Positions 42,572-48,766 of a stretch of 64,000 bases of DNA are shown piece after piece; the stretch's first letter is position 1; each line of letters opens with the position of its first letter. The notes under the pieces were generated by a model. It searched no databases. It was not told the origin of the DNA and was given only the letters and a program-made list of their open reading frames with translations. The stretch lies in NCBI GenBank assembly GCA_964247055.1, contig OZ176050.1, positions 4,402,001 through 4,466,000 on the forward strand. The letters run 5' to 3'. This DNA comes from Paragordius varius (lineage: Eukaryota; Animalia; Nematomorpha). The position numbers were made by a program, and so were the translations under genes.

Positions 42572-43758
42572 ATGAGCGTGGGTTTTAAATTTTTATTACC
42601 CAATGCTTTAAAGGCTATTTTCTTTATACTTCTGCCAATAAATACCCCAGAATATAATTTGGTAGCATATAAGGTACTCACTGATTGGAACAATGGTAAC
42701 GAAATTTTCTATATATAGTTATGGAGGGAATATATTTGTTACGAAATAACATTGATCCGTATTTATCTATTTTTTCTGAGGTACATCATATATAATTTTG
42801 AGAATCCATTAGATCTTAATTTATTTAAAATCTTGGGAACAAAAATATTGCCGTATTTATTTTTGGTATCCGAATTTAAAACATTAGATTATACAATTAA
42901 TAACCTCATATATTTGGTTTACCATTGGAAGTCGATTGCATCATAATTATATGTCTTTACTGTATTTAAAAAACTTACAATTTTAGATATATTTTTAACC
43001 CTTTTGTATTGCTCGATTTGTACATGTTAAACACTTCGGTATTTGTTCAATTCTTATATACCGCGCTACTATTTCTGTCATTATATGGTAATATTAATTT
43101 ATAAATATATAAAACATTAAATCCATAGTTAAATATATAATTTATATATTATAAACTTTATATTTGTAAAAGTTTTAAAAATAAAATTACTGTGACTTTA
43201 AAAATTGACAACATAGTCACTTAACCCAAATTACTTCGTTTTTGGAACTTATGAAATTTTATATATTTATTTAAAAAATATTTTCTCTGAGTTAAAATTA
43301 CTTTTAATTAAGAATTTAATACAAATTTTATTAATAGACTTTCAATTTTTGTCTTTTTCATATAAAAATTTATCTCATTGATAAAAAAATATAAATAGGC
43401 TATTTACTTCCGGCCTGCCTCATCATTTCAGTTTTAATGCTTCATTCAATTAATTGCCTTATCCTCATTCTACCGGTCGGATTATTGATTTACGCATTTT
43501 ATCAAGCGTCTACTAAGAGCAAAGGTTTTCAATGATAATGTTTTATATTAAAAATAGTTAAATCCGTGAATAAGAATATTAACAGAAAAAATATATTTTT
43601 TTTATAATAATTTATATTTATGTCCATATTTTAAATTATTTTATTATCCATTGGTATAAATCTAAAATAATCCTTATTTTTTGTAAATTTTCTCAGGTCC
43701 AATTCATATACTTTTCTCAGTAATTTTTAACAATGTTTAGAGATTTATACTTGTTTTT

Positions 43759-43814
<56 letters not shown>

Positions 43815-46800
43815 TCATTAAATTTTCCATACTGCCCCCTTTTAGTCGATGATAAAAGTGAACAAACTGTACTTCAAACAATAGTAATTACACTGATTTT
43901 GACTCTAACATTTTTCATCATGTTATTAGTAGCTTGCTTTTATTCCACACCAAATCGGAATTGGAATTTCTTGCACAATCTCTTTTTGGATAAGTTAGTT
44001 ATTATTTTCATTAGAAAAAATTATGGATTATAACCAAAACAGTTAGACACCGTTTTAAAACTAGACATGGAACGAAAACTAATGCATTTCTTTATAATTT
44101 ATTTTAACCAATTTTGGATAAATGTAACCTTATGTTTTAATATTGTTCTCTATCTTGTGTATCTCAAATTATATTTTATTTTTATGAATTGTAAAAAAAT
44201 ATGAAACGATGAGAATTGTTTCATGATATTCCTAAATATTTAAAAAACCAAAATTAGGACAAAACAATACATATTAAGATATCATTACATTTTAAAGTTT
44301 AATAAGAATATATTTTTTATAGGTTTTTCAACTCAGACCTGACACCGAATCTCAGTATATATTGGTACACTTTTGCTGAATCTTTTCCACATTTTTACGA
44401 ATTTTTCGTTTGGATGTTTAGATTGCCATGCTTTGTATTTTGTTTGCCTTTATCAATGAAATATGGGTAATATATGTTTTATGATTTTTTATTTTTGTTT
44501 AATTAAATTAAGTTAAACATTTTTTTTGATTATTATTTGATATATTCTTATGACAATTCTTGGTTATAAAACTCATATAATGGTTTTAATAACCAAAGCA
44601 ATAATATAAGAAAAATTATGCTATTAATATAATTTTTGGATTTAAAAAATAAAAATATTTATGAGAATATTATTATTTTTTGAGTTTGAATTAATTTTAA
44701 TATTTAATTTGGCCCGCAATACATTAATAAACCATCCAAAAACATTTTACAATATCCAATATTTTTATTTTTAGCAATGATCCATTATTCCTATACTACA
44801 TATTCTTGCACCTAATTACGCTCTTTAATCCATATAGCTCGGTGGGTGACTTGGGATTTTTGTTAACATTTTTCCCTTTTTGGATATCAAAACTATTTCC
44901 ATGTAATTTGCATATATATTATATTTTTTGATAAAATAATTTTTGCATATGTTTTAATAAAAATTTTAAACAATAAATAAAGGTTAAAAATTTTATTCAA
45001 ATTATATATTTATCCGGACGGTACTAACAATCAATTTTATGTAGTTTACCGTAAATTCTTTGTATATAGATATGCGAAATCCGTTGGTTTATCTTGGATT
45101 ATTTTTTACGGCCATTTGTCTTTCACCCATACTGTGGCACATGTGGATTTATATGGATTCGGCAAATTCCAATTTCTATTATAGCATGTCAATATTATAT
45201 ACATTAGCACATGTAAGTTTATTTTTATGAAAGATATGACCGTTCAAAATAAGTTTAGATGATTAGGTTGAATTATATAACCATTTTTTGGCAAATTGAT
45301 ATTATGCCACTTGATTAGTTGCTGTTAAACTAAATAAATATCAAAAAGGCTCTTCAAAAATCAGCAGCAATGGTTTATATCAAAATACAAATCAAAAAGA
45401 TATGTAAATTTTATGACAAATATATCAAATTATAGTTAAAAAGTTAATCGGTAAAAAATTGAAAATAGTGTAAAATGAAATAAAAGATATAAAGTTTCGA
45501 AAGCTGCATTGTAAGGGTAACCTATGGCAGGCCTACCTTTTCAGAAGAGCTAGTAAATAAAATAGGTTGTATTATTTTTCTATGTTGAATTTAGCATTAT
45601 TTACGGTTAAAATTTCGCTAAAATTCAGTCTGACATGACATACCGCTTAAAATAATTAAAATAGTGTTTGGTGTATTAATTTTTTGAAAATTTTTAATTG
45701 AGTATTTACACTATGAAAGGATAGTTAATAAGTACATATTTTTTTATCCCTACTTGTTAAATATGATTAGTATGAGAGATGTATACTTGAACATTTTTGC
45801 TATATGTGTTTTTAAGGGCTCAATACTAACATTGTTCTGATATCAAAATATAATGTAATTAATTAAATGTTTTAGTTTTACTAACTACCGTTAAAAAAAG
45901 TATTTGACAGAAGTGTTGTAGTTATAACTAAGATCGGGGTCGATTTGTCGCTCTGTAGTTATGCCAGTTGATGGATAGTTGCATTCAAAGCTTGGTTTCT
46001 TTAATCTTATCAATCCAACGCATGTTTCATCTACCACGTTTTCTTGAACTCTCACTTTTTCCGACATGAGCTGATAATGCAAGTCTAGTTATGTGTCCGA
46101 AATAAGAAAGCTTCATTTTAAGGAATAAGCAATAAGGATATTTTAGGTTTGATTTTATTGAGGTATTCAGTGTTTTCTCGACAGAAGGTGACCGTTTTTA
46201 ATTTCTGCTTTTAAGTTTGATATGATCTCTAACAAACTAAAAGCATAAGTGTCATAATAATATTGGTATACCATTTGCACTTTAAGAGTGACCTTAAACA
46301 CTTGAAGTGTCCTTGAATATAAGTTGGTCCTTGTTGGTTGTTTAACTTTATATTTTTAACTTTTATCATTCAAATCGTGTATCATTTATCTCTTATATCA
46401 TTTATAACCTATTTTTATTATTTAACATAAACTTTTAAATCAATATCAAGTTTTAATCATTCATAAACCGTATATCTTTATTACCTTCTCAAACAATATT
46501 TTTATATTTTAGATTTTGACACGTTATTTAAAAATGTATAGTATTTGTTAGAAAAATTCAAAAGGTATTAATTTTGATAAATTGGAAGAAATTGTTAGAA
46601 AAATTCATAAGGTAATAATTTTGTTAAATTGGAAGAAAATTAGTTTCGAACAAAAAAGTGGTTTTTGAATAAAAAAATTTATTTTTAAAGGAATAAATGA
46701 AGAAAATTAGGTTAAAAACAATAAAATATAAAATACATCTAAAAATTATGGTTAAATTCAAATTTAAAAATTTTAAGGATACTCTTCATGTGCTAATAGT

Positions 46801-46877
46801 ATATGTTAGCCATCCTAACATTCGTGAGACGTAGTAAGTTATTTATGATCAAAAAAATTAATATTTTGATAAAATCC

Positions 46878-46928
<51 letters not shown>

Positions 46929-47117
46929 ATCTAGATACTTTTTATATCCGATCTCTTGTATTCCTACAATTACCGTGAATTCGTGTTAGCAAATCAATCA
47001 AAATTCATGCAATTATATTCCTTGGAAACCAAACAAAATGGTGACTCTTGTTTAAACGCTGGAAAAACTATTTTACCTGACAGAAAACATGTAAAATTGT
47101 GCAACGTGTTTGATTGA
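42572..47117 (+). CDS. PIGU: GPI transamidase subunit PIG-U; exons 42572-42695, 42719-42780, 42803-42865, 42888-42961, 42987-43087, 43399-43524, 43846-43993, 44323-44466, 44775-44902, 45070-45212, 46935-47117; 431 aa
   Basis: Motifs MEGIYLL...IDPY, YIFNPF, DLTPNLSIYWYTFAESFPHF, PYSSVGD, LWHMWIYMDSANSNFYY and ILFISD. The length is close to vertebrate PIGU (~435 aa). All junctions are GT-AG and phase-consistent. Confidence 0.95.
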
Positions 47118-48766
47118 AAATGCAAGATTATATCTTAATATTTTTTTGTTTCAAATTAAATTTGACCTATTTATAAATTAATTATTATTCGTCTTTTTCG
47201 GTTCTAAAATGATGATTGTTATTAAAAAAACTAGAAATATGTGTTAAAAGTATTGAAAATTTTTTTATCTGCAACTTATTTTCGAATCCCGGTCATCGAC
47301 TGTTTTTTATAATGAGCTCTTGTATGTGAAAGATTGAATGTGAATGATAGGGTGGTGCTGGTTGGTAACAAATATTCTACTGCATTTAGAAAATTGTAAA
47401 TTTATCGGGATCCGAAACTAAAAAACTAAGAGCTATTTACCGTTTTATTCAAAATTGTTTTGACCAATGATGCTAAGAATTTTAGCACATCGGAGTTAGT
47501 TATCAATTTTTTAGTGATTGATACTCAAAAATTGCCATAGTCCTTGATAAACAAATTAAAGTAAAGTGACAATCCATATTTGATGTCGCTACGGTTTTTA
47601 GCAGCCGCGGAGCATGGAATACAGCCCCCTTAAAAAGTTTTCAAATTAGTACCTTATTAATCACGAAATCTATTTTTTGTGAATTTGAATAATCCTTAAT
47701 ACCTTCGAATATAATTTGTGACCGTTCTTTTATACCTACCATGATACAGTATTGGCGCTTTATGAAACATTATTGACTTGAAATCACCATGATTTTTTTT
47801 TCATTTTAATATGTAAATAGTTGTCTTTAGGAATAATTTTTTAATGAGCTTATTAAGAGTGACCGAATTCTTTATCATATTCTTTGATGTAAGTGGGCCA
47901 AACTAATCGTTGTTTTTTCTCCACCGATTGATGACATAAAACTTGATCAATATTTACTATGATTCAGATATAACTAATTTATTTTACAGAGTTATTAAAC
48001 TGTCATATCAAAAATGGGAACGCTATTAAACAATTTAAATTTCAGAATCGGTATCCGATTCAAGAAATTGTTCACAATATTGTATTAATTTTTGTTTAAG
48101 TGTATTTCCATCTGTTTTGGTCGTGCCGTTCAAACAAATTATGTAAAAACAAGACAAACAATTTAATTTATCTCAAAAATTATGAATAAATGTACCGAAT
48201 GACCTGCTTCAATATCTGAAAATAATAAATTATTATCAATTGTTTTTCATACGATTGGCAAATTAAAACTCGTTTCTAACTTAACCCAAAGAGTAAATTA
48301 TGGACAAAAAATGCAAAAATGTCATTTATATCATAAAATTAATTATAATTTGGTTCTAAAATACAAATTGTGATATATTCGATAATGTATACATATGTAC
48401 AAGCGCCGTTATACAAAACGTATTGAAAAAATCAAATTTCATTATGGATATTTTCAAAAAATGACATGAAAATATCAAATAAAATGCCATAAAATACAAT
48501 GTAATAAATATGTTTGTGTGTGTGCCTAAACAATAGATTTTTGTAACTTTCAATAATATATGAAAATAAATCATCAAAAAATTTACGAAATATTGGATAA
48601 AAATTATAAAAAAATGTGATATAATATGCGTTTTTATTTGAGCAAATTTTGTGGTTTGATAATGTTAGGTGCTTAACACAGAAGATAGGGTTCAAACAAT
48701 TACAATTCCAAAATATAAATAACGAATATATTTGGTTTTTGTTTGAACATTTATCCTATTTTATAA

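Follow-up and report, generated by a model that had tools for sequence, protein, structure and literature searches.

Four putative introns of 22-25 nt at the start of a horsehair worm PIGU gene

Introns shorter than about 30 bp were for a long time regarded as absent from animals, even as impossible. Documented cases are limited to two parasitic lineages, the myxobolid myxozoans (medians 22-27 bp) and Dicyema japonicum, and more are predicted (PMC13644364, Mol Biol Evol, Sept 2026). A gene of the horsehair worm Paragordius varius raises the question of whether such introns occur in an ecdysozoan as well. It lies in a 64,000-nt stretch of DNA, here called the window (C1:4402001-4466000, with a G+C content of 24-32% along its length), from an assembly of 110.6 Mb in 44 contigs; the sizes reported for the nematomorph assemblies studied are 200-300 Mb. 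A preliminary description of the window had proposed that this gene, named there as PIGU with a product of 431 aa, begins with four micro-introns of 23, 22, 22 and 25 nt. Are these segments introns, how old are they, and by what signals might they be recognized?

The identity of the gene was addressed with database searches run exon by exon or with an orthologous protein against the DNA, and the joined exon coordinates were used only to count length, phase and stop codons. In a six-frame search of the whole assembly, the Pfam profile PIG-U (PF06728; curated cut-off 24.5) matched exon 8 (window 44309-44500, 33.4 bits) and exon 10 (window 44991-45200, 36.3 bits). When exon 10 (query, window 45072-45212) was compared with 1.84 billion representative proteins, the top match was a protein of 458 residues (61% identity) from the horsehair worm Gordionus sp. 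m RMFG-2023, whose RefSeq twin, XP_065318778.1, is named PIGU-like. Exon by exon, the aligned parts are identical to Gordionus PIGU at 169 of 319 positions (53%). Exons 2-11 are collinear with that protein and in order, and from exon 3 onward its scores exceed those of the other species compared (sponge, nematode, ostracod, rotifer and mite). The base composition of Gordionus (26.9% G+C) is similar to that of the present genome. Single searches of exons 1-5 against Pfam and PDB sequences yielded no match to PIG-U, as these exons are too short for it; orthologous proteins were therefore aligned to the DNA. No protein of P. varius, annotated or transcript-derived, was found in the collections searched, which included a word search with the Gordionus protein. 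The concatenated exons amount to 1296 nt, or 431 codons and a stop, with no internal stop codon; the ATG at 42572 has an in-frame TAA directly upstream, and the stop codon lies at 47115-47117. The two profile matches, the 53% identity and the collinearity support the proposed identification of the gene as PIGU, a subunit of the GPI transamidase.

PIGU is single-copy in P. varius, because a search of the 110.6-Mb assembly with the Gordionus protein XP_065318778.1 returned this locus only. The preliminary description had allowed for a separate intact PIGU elsewhere, and the assembly holds none. A second PIG-U match, at C1:8.168 Mb, was considered as an intact, intronless PIGU and rejected; it is PIG-M (PF05007, E 9e-49), whose family is related to PIG-U, hence the match to that profile. 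PIG-M (GPI mannosyltransferase I), a partner in the GPI pathway, is intact and intronless, with 410 codons at C1:8167998-8169230 on the reverse strand.

The proposed model is given in Table 1. Letter for letter, the strings and coordinates of the four segments proved as first described, as did the spacing of 62-74 nt between them. The exon translations likewise agree with the junctions said to be restored upon excision, namely DWNN/(V)MEGIYLL, IFSE/NPL, LFL/IIQLIT and SL(L)/YIFNP. All four segments begin with GT and end with AG; the opening triplet is GTA in every one, and the closing triplet is TAG in three and GAG in one. None of the four lengths is divisible by three, and retention of any one segment leads to a stop codon 12-78 nt downstream: 20 nt past the donor for the first, after 12 nt for the second and, by a frame shift, after 78 nt for the third. 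The G+C content of the exons (22-38%) and of the micro-introns (16-27%) is nearly equal, so that a contrast in composition cannot define the latter. CAND1, in the same window, contains four segments built alike (22-23 nt, GT[AT]..AAG/TAG).

Table 1. Proposed structure of PIGU in the window, with the corresponding intron sites of Gordionus and the sponge Dysidea avara.
Feature	Window position	Strand	Length (nt)	P. varius	Gordionus	Dysidea
PIGU gene	42572-47117	+		11 exons		
Exon 1	42572-42695	+	124	only the last 3-6 codons (LTDWNN) align to orthologues		
Micro-intron 1	42696-42718	+	23	phase 1; GTAACG..ATATAG; GTAACGAAATTTTCTATATATAG; DWNN-V-MEG	42 nt, codon 46, SWRN-F-KEG	48 nt, codon 44, SWNN-V-LEG
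Exon 2	42719-42780	+	62	(V)MEGIYLLRNNIDPYLSIFSE	aligned with KEGIILHEYGIDPYDGDMFHE	
Micro-intron 2	42781-42802	+	22	phase 0; GTACAT..TTTGAG; GTACATCATATATAATTTTGAG; FSE/NPL	40 nt, after residue 67, FHE/NPI	55 nt, after residue 65, CHE/PPL
Exon 3	42803-42865	+	63	NPLDLNLFKILGTKILPYLFL; placed independently	residues 68-91	residues 66-89
Micro-intron 3	42866-42887	+	22	phase 0; GTATCC..CATTAG; GTATCCGAATTTAAAACATTAG	43 nt, after residue 91	48 nt, after residue 89
Exon 4	42888-42961	+	74	hairworm/sponge exons 4+5 minus one ancestral intron and loop residues		
Ancestral phase-0 intron				absent	41 nt, after residue 112	50 nt, after residue 110
Micro-intron 4	42962-42986	+	25	phase 2; GTATTT..TTTTAG; GTATTTAAAAAACTTACAATTTTAG	38 nt, codon 132	237 nt, codon 145
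Exon 5	42987-43087	+	101			
Intron 5	43088-43398	+	311	phase 1	40 nt, codon 166	50 nt, codon 179
Exon 6	43399-43524	+		spliced alignment		
Intron 6	43525-43845	+	321			
Exon 7	43846-43993	+		spliced alignment		
Intron 7	43994-44322	+	329			
Exon 8	44323-44466	+		spliced alignment		
Intron 8	44467-44774	+	308			
Exon 9	44775-44902	+		spliced alignment		
Intron 9	44903-45069	+	167			
Exon 10	45070-45212	+		spliced alignment		
Intron 10	45213-46934	+	1722			
Exon 11	46935-47117	+		ends with the stop codon		

The four segments were evaluated with our own spliced dynamic programme, which aligns a protein to DNA using BLOSUM62, affine gaps and a flat penalty for any GT..AG intron of at least 10 nt, with no scoring of splice sites. 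The PIGU proteins of Gordionus (XP_065318778.1) and of Dysidea avara served as queries, and both picked exactly the four micro-introns and the fifth intron of Table 1. Over the micro-intron span the alignment scored 126, compared with 40.7 +/- 7.7 (maximum 62) for 60 shuffled proteins and 35.4 +/- 5.2 (maximum 49) for 60 shuffled DNAs. The choice of the four micro-introns thus exceeds chance. Exons 6-11 were defined by the alignment to Gordionus PIGU over 43380-47600 (score 697). A final "intron" proposed at 47099-47432 was rejected as an over-fit, since the frame simply continues to the stop codon. Exon peptides were also added to a family alignment with mafft --addfragments, which misplaces exons 1 and 4 and splits exon 2, and this result was used for exons 3 and 5-11 only. 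Exon 4 has weak similarity alone and is misplaced as a free fragment, and the part of exon 1 upstream of LTDWNN is unconserved. Introns 1 and 4 are therefore placed by conserved junction residues and collinearity, as exons 1 and 4 have no significant similarity of their own.

The gene might nonetheless be mis-modelled, its true introns being at least 30 nt long and delimited by other GT..AG pairs, in an mRNA that lacks some of the residues assumed here. Every junction does offer alternatives that preserve the frame and are free of stops, at 42674-42726 (53 nt) or 42662-42726 (65 nt), 42738-42780 (43 nt), 42853-42931 (79 nt) and 42953-42986 (34 nt). The last of these uses the alternative donor at 42953 that had been noted beforehand; it is present as described, and the alignment mildly favours the 25-nt version. 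Alternatives of 30 nt or more delete the best-conserved residues (W..EG, IDPY and E/NP), they lower the best score from 126 to 81 with exons 1-2 abandoned, and they shift the introns off sites common to hairworm and sponge. We consider such a mis-modelled gene very unlikely.

The sites themselves were compared after mapping the Gordionus and Dysidea proteins exactly back onto their own genomic loci. In the spliced alignment, introns 1-5 match Gordionus exactly in position and phase (5/5), and introns 1, 2, 4 and 5 match the sponge exactly. Intron 3 falls at sponge residue 93 in this alignment, four residues off the site after residue 89; this mismatch is an offset of gap placement. In the exon-fragment alignment exon 3 covers sponge residues 66-89, and intron 3 coincides with the sponge site. 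The stretches onto which exon 3 was placed in Gordionus and in the sponge are precisely exon 3 in each species. The split codon of intron 4 also corresponds to codon 175 of the nematode Mesorhabditis belari, which has a 59-nt intron there, and exon 5 is bounded at both ends by introns in that species (59 and 43 nt). Across the whole gene, nine of the ten introns lie at Gordionus positions. Only two or three frame-preserving, stop-free GT..AG choices are available per junction, and by a rough estimate, as distinct from a formal test, four exact coincidences would arise by chance with a probability of about 1e-6 or less.

In the ostracod Darwinula stevensoni PIGU is intronless, with a single frame of 434 codons (contig CAJPEV010002232.1), and in M. 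belari it has 12 introns of 37-78 nt. Relative to hairworm and sponge, an ancestral phase-0 intron has disappeared from the region of exon 4 in P. varius, together with about 16-18 codons of the variable loop that it interrupted.

Interruptions of 22-25 nt that are AT-rich are typical of ciliates, and a reading was considered in which the segments are removed as DNA, by a ciliate-like elimination, or in which the gene is a decaying or unexpressed copy. We found no supporting points for it. The gene has 11 exons and an open frame of 431 codons that is 53% identical to the hairworm protein, and the assembly contains no other copy. The segments have GT..AG ends in four of four cases and sit at spliceosomal intron sites common to other animals. 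The genome is that of an animal, and the nearest PIGU comes from Nematomorpha and has the same gene structure. The tiny introns (~25 nt) of Paramecium and other ciliates resemble those of PIGU in length, in their GTA..TAG ends, in being AT-rich and in disrupting the frame if retained. In ciliates, however, all introns are tiny and the genetic code differs, whereas the P. varius gene reads through in the standard code, contains long introns as well and is built like an animal gene. Both the ciliate reading and the DNA-elimination reading were rejected on gene structure and nearest relatives, and decay or elimination strikes us as scarcely credible.

The splice signals of the four segments are minimal. 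Their donors are GTAACG, GTACAT, GTATCC and GTATTT, of which only GTA is kept, and the match of these 5′ splice sites to the 5′ end of U1 is limited to GTA. The six long introns have the donors GTAATA (twice), GTAATT, GTAAGT, GTTTTC and GTTAGT; four of the six begin with GTAA and are closer to the U1 complement than are the donors of the micro-introns. The U1 and U2 snRNA genes of this genome are canonical. U1 scored 124.3 bits and has the 5′ end ACTTACCTG (ACUUACCUG in the U1 genes), and U2, present in many genes with an intact GUAGUA branch-site box, scored 177.7 bits. Genome-wide, 35 or more matches to U2 exceed the Rfam cut-off. Large clusters with many diverged or partial copies are located at C3:0.26-0.53 Mb for U2 and at C6:0.56-0.63 Mb for U1. 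A search for U12 snRNA was silent, and the tool's own controls were equally silent. As judged by the best TACTAAC-like 7-mers, a candidate branch A precedes the 3′ end by 6-9 nt in the majority of the eight micro-introns of PIGU and CAND1, and by 13 nt in PIGU intron 3. The branch-point scores are low, at the level of the background in sequence of ~80% A+T.

The introns might also be genuine but spliced inefficiently or in a regulated manner, with a sizeable share of transcripts retaining micro-introns and being destroyed or truncated, so that the cluster acts as a throttle on expression. Such a role would be consistent with the premature stop that each retention brings within 12-78 nt, with the limitation of the U1 match to GTA, and with the two in-frame donors that compete at intron 4. 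Nothing specifically indicates regulation, however; the same features occur in constitutive tiny introns of other lineages (PMC13644364), and PIGU is a single-copy housekeeping gene. We therefore regard a throttle as unlikely.

Our preferred reading, to which we assign a probability of roughly 0.88, is that the four segments are genuine U2-type GT-AG introns, ancient and shrunk to 22-25 nt, in a functional single-copy PIGU. The four intron sites would predate the split between sponges and bilaterians, and the introns would have been whittled from a minimum of roughly 40 nt, as in Gordionus, to their present size, while the exons between them were left unchanged. Recognition would proceed by intron definition from a minimal signal, consisting of a 5′ GTA, an A/T-rich body in which a candidate branch A precedes the 3′ end by about 6-9 nt, and a terminal (T/G)AG. 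Splicing would take out the micro-introns in succession while the transcript is being made, and copies that retain one would be harmless because a stop codon is met within 12-78 nt. The tiny introns of the gene all fall within its first ~400 nt.

The preliminary description had also pointed to the dense spacing of the micro-introns as a problem for spliceosomes on adjacent sites. The exons are indeed small, but this is not peculiar to P. varius. Exons 2-5 measure 62, 63, 74 and 101 nt here, 65, 72, 63+59 and 101 nt in the hairworm, and 65, 72, 63+104 and 101 nt in the sponge, where they stand among introns of 48-55 nt; exon 5 is thus 101 nt long in all three genomes. With hairworm and sponge exons at 59-104 nt, only the introns have shrunk, and comparison of the three genes indicates that the small exons of 5′ PIGU are inherited and of ordinary size. 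In vertebrate splicing, internal exons below roughly 50 nt fail, and the exons of P. varius PIGU exceed that size. The steric puzzle lies inside each intron of 22-25 nt, which U1 and the U2-associated branch-site factors have to share, and not between introns. The same within-intron question has been raised for myxozoans and Dicyema (PMC13644364).

The tiny introns occupy only one end of the gene. Micro-introns 1-4 are adjacent to one another, none of them more than 415 nt from the ATG; long introns start at +516, and from there on all are 167-1722 nt long. Short introns do not dominate the gene, as six of the ten are at least 167 nt. Introns 5-10 lie at Gordionus intron positions in five of six cases. 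In Gordionus PIGU the first eight introns are likewise short (38-57 nt), followed by two long ones of 2592 and 1824 nt. The gradient from short to long is therefore common to both hairworms, and the novelty of P. varius lies in how small its short introns are.

Introns 5-8 (43088-44774) are nearly equal in length, have no common sequence and are unique in the genome; their near-equal lengths may be due to chance or to a second preferred intron size. The idea that they are micro-introns each carrying the same MITE was rejected, as they have no mutual similarity and no copies elsewhere except (TA)n. No element common to introns 5-9 was found, and these introns consist of unique sequence. Intron 10 is inflated by a dispersed repeat of ~510 nt (~46267-46779), of which at least 40 copies with 72-75% identity are present on many contigs. 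The ~67-nt ends of this repeat also match in inverted orientation beside many copies, and it therefore looks like a MITE family, possibly an old one. Long (TA)n microsatellites lie at 43757-43811 and 46880-46926, just upstream of the acceptors of introns 6 and 10. Short open frames on the reverse strand of intron 10 (45891-46116), ending ...FGHITR..., are reminiscent of the C-terminal end of insect-type LINE reverse transcriptases and may be the remnant of a retroelement.

The introns of myxobolids and Dicyema (PMC13644364) are the closest in size. They are likewise GT-AG introns of less than 30 nt at conserved positions between conserved exons, with splice signals of which only GTa on the 5′ side and AG on the 3′ side are left, a canonical U2, and weak A residues upstream of the AG as the presumed branch site. 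In those animals short introns are the genome-wide norm, whereas in P. varius PIGU only four of ten are tiny, all at the gene start, and the rest measure 167-1722 nt; the present host is, moreover, an ecdysozoan. The microintrons of flatworms (Opisthorchis felineus and others; PMC6530080) are similar in their two classes of length, their adjacent clusters, their preference for the 5′ end of genes, and the lack of a motif unique to them. They differ in a length peak of ~37 nt, compared with 22-25 nt here, and in splice sites that are closer to the consensus, where P. varius has kept only GTA. Gordionus PIGU shares nine of ten intron positions and phases, the 101-nt exon 5, and the order of short introns first and long ones last; it differs in a short class of 38-57 nt, one more ancestral intron and about 16-18 more loop residues. 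The micro-introns of P. varius PIGU thus combine the size seen in myxobolids and Dicyema with the arrangement seen in flatworms, in an ecdysozoan.

This class of introns appears to be unpublished for nematomorphs. The group goes unmentioned in the main text of PMC13644364, and the literature searched yielded no animal group with introns of less than 30 nt besides myxobolids and Dicyema, and no paper on intron length in Nematomorpha. The word "intron" is absent from the Gordionus genome paper and from a comparative nematomorph preprint.

PIGU presents a clean case of introns of less than 30 nt in a third, unrelated animal lineage, with excision that we infer from the sequence. As four tiny introns and introns of 167-1722 nt belong to one transcript, a single pre-mRNA holds both extremes. 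The gene allows the engagement of U1 and U2 on a 22-nt intron to be tested directly, and it allows the question of why the tiny class stops some 400-500 nt into the gene to be examined. For annotation, gene finders whose minimum intron length is set to 30 nt or higher would cut such 5′ ends short or splice them wrongly. We tentatively suggest, as a possibility that we hold to be somewhat doubtful, that P. varius represents a third animal lineage whose spliceosome removes introns of less than 30 nt, but only near the start of a transcript, within its first few hundred bases. If this is true, the minimal workable size of an intron would depend on its position in the transcript. The cap or the promoter-proximal polymerase might then aid the recognition of sites reduced to GTA, or a 5′ zone protected from insertions might let deletions drive introns to a physical floor. 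The series of 22-25 nt here, 38-43 nt in Gordionus and 48-55 nt in the sponge (237 nt at the fourth site) would in that case offer a natural experiment, ready-made, on how small an intron can be and still be spliced in animals.
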